Shown here piece by piece: positions 5,133-59,020 of a stretch of 64,000 nt of DNA. The position numbers and the translations under genes were made by a program. How positions within the stretch are numbered: position 1 is the stretch's first letter; every line of letters begins with the position of its first letter. The notes below the pieces were generated by a model. That model worked only from the letters and a program-made list of their open reading frames with translations. It was not told where the DNA came from and did no database searches. The DNA is from Piromyces finnis finn (Eukaryota > Fungi > Neocallimastigomycota): assembly GCA_002104945.1 (NCBI GenBank), contig MCFH01000026.1, positions 310,001-374,000 on the forward strand, read 5' to 3'.

Positions 5133-6622
5133 ATGTCTTTTGAAAATCCATCTATGATACCACCTGCAATTACTGGCGCCAATGCTGGTAATGTTATACC
5201 TTCAACCCCAATAGCATCAACACCTTTACCTTCTACCCCATTCAACGATCCACAAAATTCTTCTGGAATACGACCAACCTTACAGTAAATAAAAATGCAA
5301 TCTTTTAAATATACAATTTTTTTTATGGATGATTCATTTATATTTTAATTTGTTTGTTTGTTTTCAATAGTAATAATAATACAGTTTATTACTTTTAAAA
5401 AAAAAACGTTATAATTTAAAAATAAAATAGACATTTACCTATTATTATTTTTTTCATTTAAAAAAAAAATAAAAATTTGAAATTTCTAATATCTTCCTTT
5501 TAAAATATATAATACATTTTTTATAAATATAAAAAGAAATATTGTCGCAACTGTTAATTTAGAAACCCGTCTTGATTTAAAGACCATCGCACTTCATGCA
5601 AGAAATGCAGAATATAACCCAAAAGTAAGAATCAAAAAGAAAAAATAATAATTTAATGATTAAAAAAAGAAAAATTGTAAAATATTGGGTGAAACGTGAG
5701 AGGGGAGAGTAAAAATAGTAAAAATGATATTAAAAATGCAATTTAATAGAATAAAAAAAAACTATGCATAATTTAATATCCTTTGTATATTAAAGATTGA
5801 TTTCAAGATTAATTTAAAAGAAATAAAAGCATAAGAATGTATATAATGAAGATAGTATTGTTTATTCGATAGCATTAGAATGAAACATGATATTTTCAAC
5901 TTTTTAGTATGTGCAGTTGATAAATTAAAAATATATATATTAATAAAATATATTTATTTTTATTAATAATTACAGCGTTTCGCTGCCGTAATTATGCGTA
6001 TCAGAGAACCAAAAACAACTGCATTAATTTTTGCTTCTGGTAAAATGGTCGTTACTGGTGCTAAGAGTGAAGAACAATCTAGATTAGCAGCAAGAAAATA
6101 TGCTAGAATTATTCAAAAGCTTGGTTTTCCAGCAAGATTTAGTGAATTTAAAATACAGAATATTGTAGGTAGTTGTGATGTTAAATTCCCAATTCGTTTA
6201 GAAGGTTTAGCTTGTGCTCACGGTCACTTCTCAAGTGTATGTCTCACAAACTATATACAATATAATTTTATCCAATTGACATAAAATGAACCATTATAAT
6301 GAATAATAACCAATTTATTAATTTTTTATTATTATTATATTTATAGTATGAACCAGAATTATTCCCAGGTCTTATCTACCGTATGGTTAAACCAAAAATT
6401 GTACTACTTATTTTCGTTTCTGGAAAAATTGTATTGACTGGTGCTAAGGTATTATTTAATCCTTTTACTCAAAAAATTTAAAGTGAAACGCGATTTAAAA
6501 GATTGCCTTTTTTTAACTCTCAATTTTTTTTTTCTTTTTTTTTTTAATTATAGATCAGAGAAGAAATTTATCAAGCCTTCGAAAACATTTATCCTGTATT
6601 AACTGATTTCAGAAAAACATAA
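5133..6622 (+). CDS. TBP: TATA-box binding protein, 5 exons
   Basis: Exons 5133-5284, 5537-5624, 5976-6236, 6347-6448, 6554-6622. Motifs [50 protein letters not shown] and [13 protein letters not shown]. Confidence 0.97.
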
Positions 6623-6957: not shown

Positions 6958-7392
6958 CTATTAAACAATTATAGACAATCAATAAAATATAATAAACAAA
7001 AATAAAAATAATTATATAATATAAAAAAAGTGTTTCACTTTTAAAAAATTCAAACTTTTAAAAAAAAAAAAAAAAAAAACCTATTTTAAATTTAAATAGG
7101 ATTTTTAAATTGGTAATGGTAGAATGGTAGTGTAGGTATAATCTAGTCATGCTATCACCTACCACCACCACCACCATGGCCATAGAAAAAAACCAAATTT
7201 TTTTTAAAAATAAAAAAAAAAAATTAATAATGATGAATAAATAAATATTATTATTTTTGATTGGTTCATGACACATTAAATTTTTATTCATAAAAATAGA
7301 GGTAGTGGAATTTCATAAATATTCCAAGAATATTCAAATAAATAAGAAGGAAGTGTCGTCGCGCAAAAAAGAATTTTTTTTTTTTGGTCTCT

Positions 7393-7619
7393 AAAAAGGG
7401 CTTATGTTTTTTTTTGTAAAATAAAAATTTTTTTTTTATTTTACAAAGGGTATAACACATTCCTGAATAAATACTTTTTTAAAAATTTTTTTTGGTCAAG
7501 TTTACCTTACCAAAAGAAAAGTTTTTTATAAATATTTATTGGGAGTGCGGAATCGATATCAAGAGATTTCGTGAGCATAATTTTTGAGACCTGAGAGAGT
7601 GGAAAAGTTTTTAGGGTCC
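7393..7619 (+). ncRNA. U11: U11 snRNA (minor spliceosome) with expanded stem-loops I and II
   Basis: 5' AAAAAGGGCTT at 7393-7403 matches the U11 5' end. GTGCGGAATCGATATCAAGAGATTTCGTGAGCATAATTTTTG at 7545-7586 closely matches recalled human U11 SL3 plus Sm site (GUGCGGAAUCGACAUCAAGAGAUUUCGGAAGCAUAAUUUUUUG). A 3' hairpin GACC...GGTC follows at 7588-7618. Confidence 0.9.
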
Positions 7620-8174
7620 AAATTCTTTTTTTTTTAATTTTAATGGTAGTTGATCCTTTATCAGATATCATTAAAAAAAAAAATAAAAGTTAGGATTAAC
7701 ATTCTACTCCGTTTAAAAAATATTTTATTTTAAAATTGAATTTAAAAAGTTTTTTTTTTTTAATAAAATAGGTATAGTATTTATTATAATATTTTTAAAA
7801 GTAAATGCTTTAGAAGCTTTTAAAAGAAGTTCACGTGTAGAATAGAAAAATAAACACAAAAGAATTAAAAGTATAATGTATTCTAGTCATTTTAACAACA
7901 TAAAAATAAAACTACCACCATAAAGTCATAGTTTAATAATTATACTTTAATTTTTTTTATTTTTTAAAACCATAAAAGATTCATATTTTAATTTTTATAA
8001 CATCAACTAATTACTTTAAAACTTGCCTTTTTTATTCTTTAATAATACCTTCTAATATTTCAATCTTCTATATATAAAAAAATATTATTCATCTCATAAA
8101 ATAATTATTCATTAAAATTCTGAAATAAAATTAAATTTTTAAATTAAATAAGTCTATAATAATTCAATATTTTA

Positions 8175-46300: not shown

Positions 46301-47427
46301 TAAACTAATGGAGTTTCCTTATTTTCGTTTATAAAGGCATTAATATCAACGTATGAAGCTATAACTTCGATAACATGTAAATTACCTGTATCTAATGCAG
46401 AAGCAAATAAATTTTTGCTTGAATTAGAGGAAGTAAATAAACTCTTATCTTTAGTTTTCTGGAATAAGCAATCAAGAGTATCCTTATCTTGATTCTCAAT
46501 AGCAATTTTGAATAAAGACTTTTTATTTCCAGCTATAACCTTTGAAGTATCAACATCTTTTTGATGATTCAATAACATCTTTAAAATATCTACATTCTTT
46601 TCCTTAACTGCTAATACTAAAGCAGTATCACCATCCTTATTCTTATTTGTTAAATCTGGATTTTTGGTTAATAAGAATTCAACAACCTTTTTACGGTTTT
46701 CTTTACAAGCTCTCATTAATAAAGTGTTTTCATCGACATCCTTAACATTAATAATTTGTTCTTCAAAATTCTTATCTTCCTTTTTGTCCTTCTTTTCGTC
46801 TTTAGCATCCTCTTTCTTATCTTTTTCCTTCTTATCTTTTTCTTCCTTTTTGTTTTTTATTTCTATATTGATAATTTCAGCGAATTCATCTTCAAGGACT
46901 AATAATTTAAATAATATATAAGATCCTTTATTATCATTAGCTTCCTTTTCCTTAACTAATGTGGTAGCACCATGTCTAATTAATTGTAATGCAGTAGAAT
47001 ACTTTTTATCGTCAACAGCCATGACTAATGGGAATTTACCATCCTTCTTCTTTTTGAAACTGAATTTTGGATTTTTTTCTAATAAAATATTTAAAATATT
47101 TTCATTTTTACAATTCATGGCCATGGTTAAAGCATTATCATTATTATTATTTCTATTATTAAACTTGAGTGGATATTGTAAAAGATATTTAAGAATATTT
47201 TCATTTTCACCGTAGATAGCCAAATGTAATGCAGTATTTCCATCCTTATTTTTTATATTCAAATCTCTTTCATTATTTTCTTCTAATAATTTTTTTACTA
47301 ATTTCTCATCATTGTTGATGATTGCTACCATTAAAGGATCATTACCATTTTCATCAGTTTTAACTTTAACTTGATTAACTTCTTTTATTTCCTCATTTAA
47401 GGAAACTTCAATATCATTGGTAACCAT
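43321..47427 (-). CDS. large ankyrin-repeat protein, 1368 aa, intronless
   Basis: Three clusters of ankyrin repeats (GNTALHLA, GNTPLHYAC, GDTPLMIAV, ETPLIAAC, GETPMTIA) separated by charged and S/P-rich linkers. Confidence 0.93.
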   Translation of the reverse strand: MVTNDIEVSLNEEIKEVNQVKVKTDENGNDPLMVAIINNDEKLVKKLLEENNERDLNIKNKDGNTALHLAIYGENENILKYLLQYPLKFNNRNNNNDNALTMAMNCKNENILNILLEKNPKFSFKKKKDGKFPLVMAVDDKKYSTALQLIRHGATTLVKEKEANDNKGSYILFKLLVLEDEFAEIINIEIKNKKEEKDKKEKDKKEDAKDEKKDKKEDKNFEEQIINVKDVDENTLLMRACKENRKKVVEFLLTKNPDLTNKNKDGDTALVLAVKEKNVDILKMLLNHQKDVDTSKVIAGNKKSLFKIAIENQDKDTLDCLFQKTKDKSLFTSSNSSKNLFASALDTGNLHVIEVIASYVDINAFINENKETPLVYLVEKVKNEIIEAEQYYKSLYLKNKERYERLALEASKESTPVISDHEVIEVGKSSDNSKIINETSSQADESENTLKDMTASSEEIIENSNVNTVVMDEPQEEKMNINSGKSTPVNSPVIPVTPGTPSTPGRLARRKLTVRRTYSSYEKMAESEKKIQDILNSGGTINEKFNSIENAYNTNRKLLNGDRYWKAKDKTYVVESDYIDIIKYLLLMNAKITIKNAKQETALHIACRYGLRNILESLLKNGKNFDINCTDKDGNTPLHYACYGKYTSIVKILLRESQINVNITDPNGDTPLMIAVYNNHSDTVLELLKYPKTNIDMLNKVLETSLIAACRLNYYNIAKILIDHKANINNRYDANGETAIFHSIRNGSKILTKYLLNNKACITYTNKDGQTPLTLAKSLDNKEVTGILLKHIESDKSLTRRNTERPYIPRNSSRYSPSGKSSPDVKPYHTRIKSESSNLKSRNSYSSSYQSKSENASPKVSGNEEFKNTLSSLETESGNATSVKVPSMMMMEPSSIYDKSENVTKDIKEAFSLNGSKMSMMQEPSSLYDEPSEIPPTPAHKPAAAMFAEPQSSMMQEPTSLFEEPAEEKKESHYKNIKFKPNTKFSTNIGSSYSKPKKSIKGTATSSPYLKNVFTSPKANTTYVKKTMYKPERFPATYTRVNSENSMFDKKNKTSTVTPYEKTGTMDTETKEIPILNDDIKGLRFSCYFGDMDGVEAFLKSAMREKNIFQLPQNFYNPLNPEKPNINELKEFNKTRQGYITLDHIEMFSFSLICNGSQNDKLLEIMLRYGMNPNIQNNALYTLLILACKKGQETSALTLMEYNCNPNYQNKYKETALLLACKKGLVNVVKKLLELKVDVNMCNYKKESPLIMACWKKQEAIVKLLLEQEIDIDHCNSLKESSLFISCYQNSIEITKSLLEHGADINTKNVNDETPLIAACNNNNEKLVELLLKYKANTNIKTSNGETPMTIAKRFKNQKIINLLNKTN

Positions 47428-57672: not shown

Positions 57673-58009
57673 TTATTTTATTTCTTTTCTTTGCTTTTTT
57701 TTTTTTTTTTCCTTTTCTTTTAATAAAAAGGAAAATGTTACTTTTTTGTTTTTTTAAAATTTTTTTAAAAATCATTAATAATTAAAAATAGATTAATATA
57801 TTAAATAATATATTAATGATTATATTTTCTATTTATTCAATAAAATATATTTTTTAAAGTTTTTTTTTTAATTTTCGATAATTTAATTATTATCTATATT
57901 ACAATATAATTTATATATATAATATGTTTTTTTAAATTTTAAAAAATTTAAACTTCACCACCACCTAATGTCCTATAAAAAAAAAGCTTATGCACAACAA
58001 CAACGATAA

Positions 58010-59020
58010 TAATGAAAGAATTTTTCTATACTACTACTACTGCTACTACTACTAATACTAATACTACTACTAATACTACTACTAATACTAATACTACTAC
58101 TACTACTAATACTACTACTAATACTAATACTAATACTAATACTAATACTAATACTAATACTACTACTAATACTAATACTACTACTAATACTAATACTAAT
58201 ACTAATACTAATACTAATACTAATACTAATACTACTACTAATACTAATACTAATACTAATACTAATACTAATACTAATACTAATACTAATACTAATACTA
58301 ATACTAATACTAATACTAATACTAATACTAATACTAATACTAATACTAATACTAATACTAATACTAATACTAATACTAATACTAATACTAATACTAATAC
58401 TAATACTAATACTAATACTAATACTAATACTACTACTAATACTACTACTAATACTACTACTAATACTACTACTAATACTACTACTAATACTACTACTAAT
58501 ACTAATACTACTACTACTACTACTAATACTAATACTAATACTAATACTAATACTAATACTAATACTAATACTAATACTAATACTAATACTAATACTAATA
58601 CTAATACTAATACTAATACTAATACTAATACTAATACTAATACTAATACTAATACTAATACTAATACTAATACTAATACTAATACTAATACTAATACTAA
58701 TACTAATACTAATACTAATACTAATACTAATACTAATACTAATACTAATACTAATACTAATATTAATACTAATACAATTATTAAAAGGTAATATGGATAT
58801 CAAAGATATAAAAAAAATTTACTAAGCTAAATGAAGATGAATTATCGATTGTAAAAGAATTCTATATTTTACAATCTAAATTATAAAGTCAACGATTTAG
58901 CATTAATATTTGAACTTGACAAGATGCGTATACTAAAAAAATTTAGATGAATTGGGATTAGCTACTAAAGAAAGAGGAATAATAAAAAAGAAGATTATCA
59001 AAAATAAGGTTGAAATAAAC
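58010..59020 (+). pseudogene. inverted, frameshifted copy of the 57193-57672 gene interrupted by an (ACTAAT)n array
   Basis: From 58776 onward (ATTATTAAAAGGTAATATGGATATCAAAGATATAAAA...GAATTGGGATTAGCTACTAAAGAAAGAGGAATAAT) the sequence matches the reverse complement of ~57330-57575, with indels. Confidence 0.85.
58030..58775. repeat. (ACTAAT)n/(ACT)n microsatellite, ~745 bp
   Basis: Directly visible; source of the poly-TN and poly-IS ORFs. Confidence 0.97.

Follow-up and report, generated by a model that had tools for sequence, protein, structure and literature searches.

The probable single U11 snRNA gene of Piromyces finnis carries two greatly lengthened AU-rich stem-loops

A 64,000-nucleotide stretch of the Piromyces finnis genome, referred to here as the window, contains at positions 7393-7619 of its plus strand a sequence that begins and ends like a U11 snRNA and has an unusually long middle. 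This raises the question of whether the locus encodes a working U11 and, if so, what the additional sequence is. We found that the U11-type 5′ end (AAAAAGGGCUUAUG), SL3, the Sm site and a 3′ hairpin are all present. In a search of positions 7300-7700 with E-value thresholds, the Rfam U11 model (RF00548) matched the locus with 38.2 bits and an E value of 1.4e-5, and U11 was the only non-trivial Rfam family to match there. Across the whole genome (56,455,805 bases in 232 contigs), this locus gave the only U11 match, with an E value of 4.9e-4. At gathering thresholds, no Rfam match was obtained in the window, as the locus misses the U11 gathering score of 39 by 0.8 bit. The covariance check named by the initial annotation thus gave a low E value at the sole matching locus of the genome, together with a score below the Rfam cutoff. 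In the Rfam alignment, SL3, the Sm site and the adjoining strand of helix H were placed with top posterior probability, and the model was forced onto 7514-7628, which put its 5′ end at 7514 and not at 7393. We attribute both the sub-gathering score and the misplaced 5′ end to a 143-nt insertion that the model cannot bridge.

We aligned the P. finnis sequence with three canonical U11s from a pattern scan of metagenome contigs, which score 96-99 bits against the Rfam model (alignment A1). Positions 7393-7401 are identical to the canonical U11s, 13 of the first 14 nucleotides are invariant, and so are 37 of the 41 nucleotides of the block from SL3 to the Sm site. This block is also close to identical with that of animal U11s. 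The canonical genes, 119-139 nt long, lie on contigs L005/L007, L008 and L010, which come from eukaryotes that we take not to be human; over the part compared, L005 and L007 do not differ, and both also bear a tRNA. Besides these genes the metagenome scan returned two chance matches and nothing else. The assignment as U11 made by the initial annotation is therefore supported, and we consider it very probable that P. finnis has its only functional U11 snRNA gene at 7393-7619.

The predicted secondary structure follows the canonical U11 plan. In both the minimum free energy and the centroid fold, SL1, SL2 and SL3 radiate from a four-helix junction that is closed by helix H; the centroid fold shows three hairpins between the two strands of helix H, followed by the Sm site and SL4. 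The 5′ end (AAAAAGGGCTTATG, 7393-7406; all coordinates of the RNA are on the plus strand) starts with AAAAAGG (7393-7399), which is single-stranded in the fold and continues into G7400. In both folds, the 5′ strand of helix H, GCUUA (7400-7404), pairs with UGAGC (7572-7576), and these five base pairs are the counterpart of the 5-bp closing helix in the Rfam consensus. SL3 (7548-7571) has a 7-bp stem, CGGAAUC/GAUUUCG, and a 10-nt loop, GAUAUCAAGA, which carries AUCAAGA and is invariant relative to the canonical U11s; its placement is given by the highest Rfam posterior mark (*), by A1 and by the fold. The Sm site AAUUUUUGA (7579-7587), located by the Rfam alignment and A1, fits the consensus PuAU4-6GPu (PMC2396436). 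The RNA closes with GTGCGGAATCGATATCAAGAGATTTCGTGAGCATAATTTTTGA and then a 32-nt terminal hairpin, SL4 (7588-7619), which folds into 5+5+1 bp with a z score of −2.3. The 3′ end is probably at 7619-7625.

Between the 5′ end and SL3 there are 155 nt, including the 143 nt that make up SL1 and SL2, two long AU-rich hairpins at the canonical positions of these arms in the four-helix junction. SL1 (7405-7457) is 53 nt long, with 22 bp, where the canonical U11s in A1 have roughly 14 nt. It consists of four base pairs, UGUU/AACA, followed by an 18-bp AU-rich helix with a UUUUU loop; the inverted repeat TTTGTAAAATAAAAA/TTTTTATTTTACAAA (7413-7427/7433-7447) lies within it, the mean pair probability in the 18-bp helix is 0.95 and the z score of the arm alone is −5.4. 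SL2 (7458-7547) is 90 nt long, compared with roughly 30 nt in canonical U11s, and has about 37 bp in six helical segments (z score alone, −4.5). Its inverted repeat TCCTGAATAAATA/TATTTATTGGGA (7461-7473/7533-7544) encloses a further pairing, TTTTGGT/ACCAAAA (7490-7496/7509-7515). The SL1 and SL2 helices are predictions supported by thermodynamics only, not by covariation. The RNA as a whole has a minimum free energy of −59.3 kcal/mol and a z score of −5.27 relative to dinucleotide shuffles. Of 2112 segments of this length taken from the 64 kb, only 0.6% are as stable, and all of these lie in a simple tandem repeat; the stems of this U11 exceed what is expected by chance in this DNA. The repeat itself (57860-58900, with periods of 9, 12 and 18) yields 227-nt windows at −100 to −114 kcal/mol and is the only spot in the window that is more stable than U11. 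The description that we started from, a U11 of about 227 nt with AU-rich stem expansions, and the inverted repeats, SL3 and Sm site that it named were all recovered.

The composition of the two arms differs from that of the rest of the RNA. The conserved core has a GC content of 39%, whereas the 143 nt of SL1 and SL2 have 19% (13% for SL1 and 22% for SL2), which equals the genome background and the flanking kilobases. Because of this match with the flanks, the extra sequence resembles background DNA whose self-pairing arose by chance or under selection. A search of 240 kb of P. finnis genome DNA gave no further copy of the insert. The initial annotation spoke of structure kept despite compositional drift. 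This wording suits the core with its higher GC content, but not SL1, which was not kept but greatly lengthened, nor the insert with its background composition.

As two arms are stretched by AT-rich sequence, this U11 is about 70% longer than usual (about 227 nt, compared with 134 nt in the Rfam model). The lengths of the other snRNAs in this genome, with those of the Rfam models in parentheses, are 176 nt for U12 (151 nt), 149 nt for U6atac (126 nt), about 129 nt for U4atac (132 nt), 166-168 nt for U1 (166 nt) and 135 nt for U4 (138 nt). U1 belongs to the same clan as U11, shares its four-helix-junction plan and a CCAATCA box upstream, and scores a canonical 104-117 bits. As U1 has its canonical size, the expansion is a feature of U11 in particular and not a property of snRNAs across this genome. 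The middle stem-loop of U12 contains an AU-rich insertion of roughly 20 nt relative to the Rfam model (contig L002, minus strand, about 1590-1610).

The initial annotation had inferred a minor spliceosome in this fungus from the U11. Scans of the same 232 contigs (56,455,805 bases) found U12 with 66.6 bits and U6atac with 52.1 bits, both above gathering. A third candidate, with 49.2 bits as U4atac, was labelled U4 under Rfam clan competition. Its 5′ sequence CGUCCUUAUCU is the exact complement of AGAUAAGGACG in U6atac, forming an 11-bp stem II, which is followed by a second helix between the two RNAs, GGGAU/AUCCC. Because it pairs with U6atac in this way and a separate canonical U4 (89.9 bits) exists elsewhere in the genome, we assign the candidate as U4atac. 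The 5′-splice-site box of U6atac reads GCCGAGAGA in place of the Rfam consensus AAGGAGAGA (L004:1511-1520).

Two proteins of the U11/U12 particle were also detected. U11-48K is represented by an exon encoding a CHHC zinc finger (PF05253, 27.9 bits), which on its own is ambiguous, and by an exon about 0.8 kb downstream on the same strand that matches only human SNRNP48, at residues 202-247 (E value of 1.9e-9). For U11/U12-25K we found an exon with the ubiquitin-like domain of SNRNP25 (PF18036, 35 bits), which matches mouse and human 25K chains in the PDB with E values of 8e-4 to 2e-3. PDCD7/59K had no Pfam match in the genome, and the search for 35K, by a genome-wide RRM_1 scan and a signature regular expression, was uninformative. 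Thus the three partner RNAs that the initial annotation had suggested looking for are all encoded, and its suggested protein search yielded 48K and 25K but not PDCD7/59K. Together with the introns described below, these RNAs and proteins support the presence of a minor splicing system, as had been inferred.

We searched for U12-type introns with the pattern RTATCCTT-N(15-300)-TTCCTTAAC, in which the last element is the branch site, and used the reversed pattern as a control. A branch site TTCCTTAAC located 10-15 nt from the 3′ end was taken as the U12-type criterion. The pattern had 23 matches, compared with 7 for the reversed control. Eight matches were AT-AC introns flanked by open frames that agree in phase (contigs L031, L032, L033, L036, L038, L045, L052 and L053), with ATATCCTTT 5′ ends and the branch site TTCCTTAAC. 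Their hosts include ATG9, a KAP120/importin-like gene, TAF4 and the gene for the largest subunit of an RNA polymerase (RPC1). In four of the eight, the branch site is unusually far from the AC, at 23-33 nt. The exons flanking AT-AC introns were searched separately, each on its own. The 87-nt intron in ATG9 (L052:1491-1577, minus strand) was validated by exon continuity: the upstream exon corresponds to positions 415-451 of Pfam ATG9 and the downstream exon to positions 453-478, and the codon split by the intron supplies position 452. For the KAP120/importin-like gene (L031), the upstream exon matches KAP120 residues 506-551 and the downstream exon had no PDB match, so this intron is half confirmed. 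The window contains a single match to the pattern, at 46478-46608; it lies inside an apparent minus-strand coding sequence and is a chance match, in agreement with the initial annotation, which had found no U12-type intron in the window.

These introns can be compared directly with the 5′ end of the RNA. AAAAAGG, with or without G7400, is complementary to positions +4 to +10 or +11 of the U12-type 5′ splice site (UCCUUUU; AAAAAGGGC), and the U11 5′ end is predicted to form a duplex of 7-8 bp with the AUAUCCUUUU 5′ splice sites of this genome. All eight phase-consistent AT-AC introns have a T at +9, which lengthens the stretch complementary to the U11 5′ end.

The region upstream of the locus was compared with those of the other snRNA genes (contigs L054, L055, L056, L002 and L003, with 7258-7264 of the window). 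An exact CCAATCA is present at −100 and −99 in two U1 genes, at −102 in U4, at −103 in U12 and at −143 in U4atac, and 142 kb of P. finnis genome DNA contain it at a background rate of 0.02 per 200 nt. At U11 the box is inverted: it lies on the minus strand at 7258-7264, where the plus strand reads TGATTGG, 135-129 nt upstream of the 5′ end. On sequence grounds, CCAATCA is a candidate for an upstream promoter element common to the Pol II snRNA genes of this fungus, and the shared box ties the U11 locus to the snRNA gene set, although its orientation and distance differ. Upstream of U6atac there is a CCAATAG at −89. TATAAATA-like boxes occur at about −35 (U1 and U4) or at about −45 to −50 (U12 and U4atac), and these together with CCAATCA may constitute the snRNA promoter architecture of this fungus. 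A GC-rich block, GTGTCGTCGCGC, is located on the plus strand at 7353-7364 (−40 to −29), amid sequence of 19% GC; it is possibly a proximal promoter element, and no counterpart was found in front of the other snRNA genes. A gene for a TATA-box-binding protein (5133-5288 and 5994-6284, plus strand) is located about 1.1 kb upstream of U11, and its second exon is 97-100% identical to open reading frames on metagenome contigs of related anaerobic fungi. These contigs, found through this synteny (L011-L023 and L057), could be aligned up to about 6996 and then run into low-complexity sequence, short of U11. For the 163-amino-acid open reading frame downstream, no relatives were found.

The minor spliceosome of P. 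finnis is not new, because a survey that applied the four Rfam models of minor snRNAs used here (E < 0.01) to over 3000 genomes lists Neocallimastigomycetes including P. finnis as having minor introns and many or all of the minor snRNAs (Larue & Roy, NAR 2023, PMC10639083). The same four-snRNA set and AT-AC and GT-AG U12-type introns are found in other early-diverging fungi, Rhizopus, Rhizophagus and Spizellomyces (PMC2396436, PMC10639083); these reports give presence calls, or drawings for other species. In the literature, we came across no account of the P. finnis U11 structure, and its anatomy, with an SL1 of 22 bp, is what is new here. In common with the human U11 (RF00548, 135 nt) it has the 5′ end (AAAAAGGGCUU in human), the 5-bp helix H, the four-helix junction, the 7-bp SL3 with its 10-nt AUCAAGA loop and the Sm site (AAUUUUUG) followed by a terminal hairpin, and the human U11 partners 48K and 25K are also encoded in the P. 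finnis genome. The U11 of Drosophila melanogaster, an independent lineage, is likewise much lengthened with its stem-loop plan kept, at 275 nt compared with 135 nt in human according to a passage of PMC12084885 that cites Schneider et al. 2004; in this comparison P. finnis is marked by retaining 48K and 25K. The Drosophila length indicates that U11 tolerates large expansions.

Taken as a working U11, the RNA of roughly 227 nt would recognise U12-type 5′ splice sites (AUAUCCUUUU) by base pairing between their positions +4 to +10 and its unpaired 5′ end, AAAAAGGG, and would do so jointly with U11-48K, inside a U11/U12 particle. Helix H, the four-helix junction, SL3 with the AUCAAGA loop, the Sm site and SL4 would keep the canonical plan, and the distal parts of SL1 and SL2 would have grown by about 100 nt of self-pairing AT-rich sequence of background composition. 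These extensions most likely stick out from the particle and are passive. We infer that the gene is transcribed, that the expansions are present in the mature RNA and that they play such a passive role.

Could the locus instead be a decaying relic, a disused U11 gene with a middle overrun by AT-rich sequence, in a lineage where minor splicing is being lost? Several observations fit this picture: a Rfam score just below gathering, a 143-nt middle exactly of background composition, a CCAATCA box both displaced and inverted, and a PDCD7 that Pfam does not detect. However, this is the sole U11 locus of the genome, and U12-type introns with intact consensus sequences interrupt essential-looking genes (ATG9, TAF4, RPC1 and the importin) and therefore must be spliced. 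Every functional element of the RNA is intact and near-invariant, U11-48K and 25K are retained, and the insert extends precisely the tips of SL1 and SL2 with near-perfect helices and leaves the junction undisturbed. We consider decay very unlikely.

It is less likely still that the gene is functional but that its 143-nt middle is wholly or partly removed or untranscribed, so that the mature U11 is of near-canonical size. Some fungi have intron-containing snRNA genes, and GT and AG dinucleotides do occur inside the region, yet it contains no credible 5′ splice site or branch consensus, its removal would cost SL1 and SL2 entirely, and what it contains is two separate hairpins that begin and end exactly at the junction. 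A mature U11 as long as that reported for Drosophila in the cited passage of PMC12084885 also argues against such removal. As for a chance resemblance in AT-rich DNA, or another RNA of the U1/U11 clan, the match below the gathering score and the ease with which hairpins form in AT-rich DNA would allow it, but the genome-wide E value was obtained even for a misaligned match, and an exact U11 5′ end, independent of that match, is placed so as to form the 5-bp helix H with the 3′ side of SL3. The genome has separate, canonical U1 genes. This last reading is effectively refuted, and a functional U11 gene with expanded arms remains our preferred interpretation.

A functional U11 of this shape bears on how the particle is assembled. 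In the cryo-EM structure of the human U11 snRNP, SL1 is a very short hairpin that stacks through its loop on the loop of SL3, a stack that is recognised by SNRNP25 (25K) and SNRNP35 (35K) and that the longer helices of U1 could not make; human SL3, with a conserved UCA, is the site of the SNRNP35 RRM (bioRxiv 10.1101/2023.12.22.573053). We hypothesize that an SL1 of 22 bp could not build the human-type platform in the same way. As the fungus combines a rod-like SL1 of 22 bp with an unchanged SL3 and still encodes 25K and 48K, it is possible, if somewhat doubtful, that the fungal U11 particle assembles by a different contact, for example through SL3 alone or the base of SL1. If this were true, the SL1-SL3 platform would not be universal, and the architecture of the U11 particle would be more plastic than the single solved structure implies.

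The map of where minor splicing occurs is unchanged by the P. finnis U11. What is gained is exact coordinates and an anatomy for the U11 of an anaerobic gut fungus for which minor splicing had been on record only as a presence call from a survey. That the Rfam U11 model narrowly misses the gene at gathering, owing to the insertion, is a warning for surveys that infer the loss of minor splicing from snRNA scans. The gene also serves as a natural experiment on what U11 can do without: SL1 and SL2 are free in length, and the 5′ end, helix H, SL3 and the Sm site are fixed.
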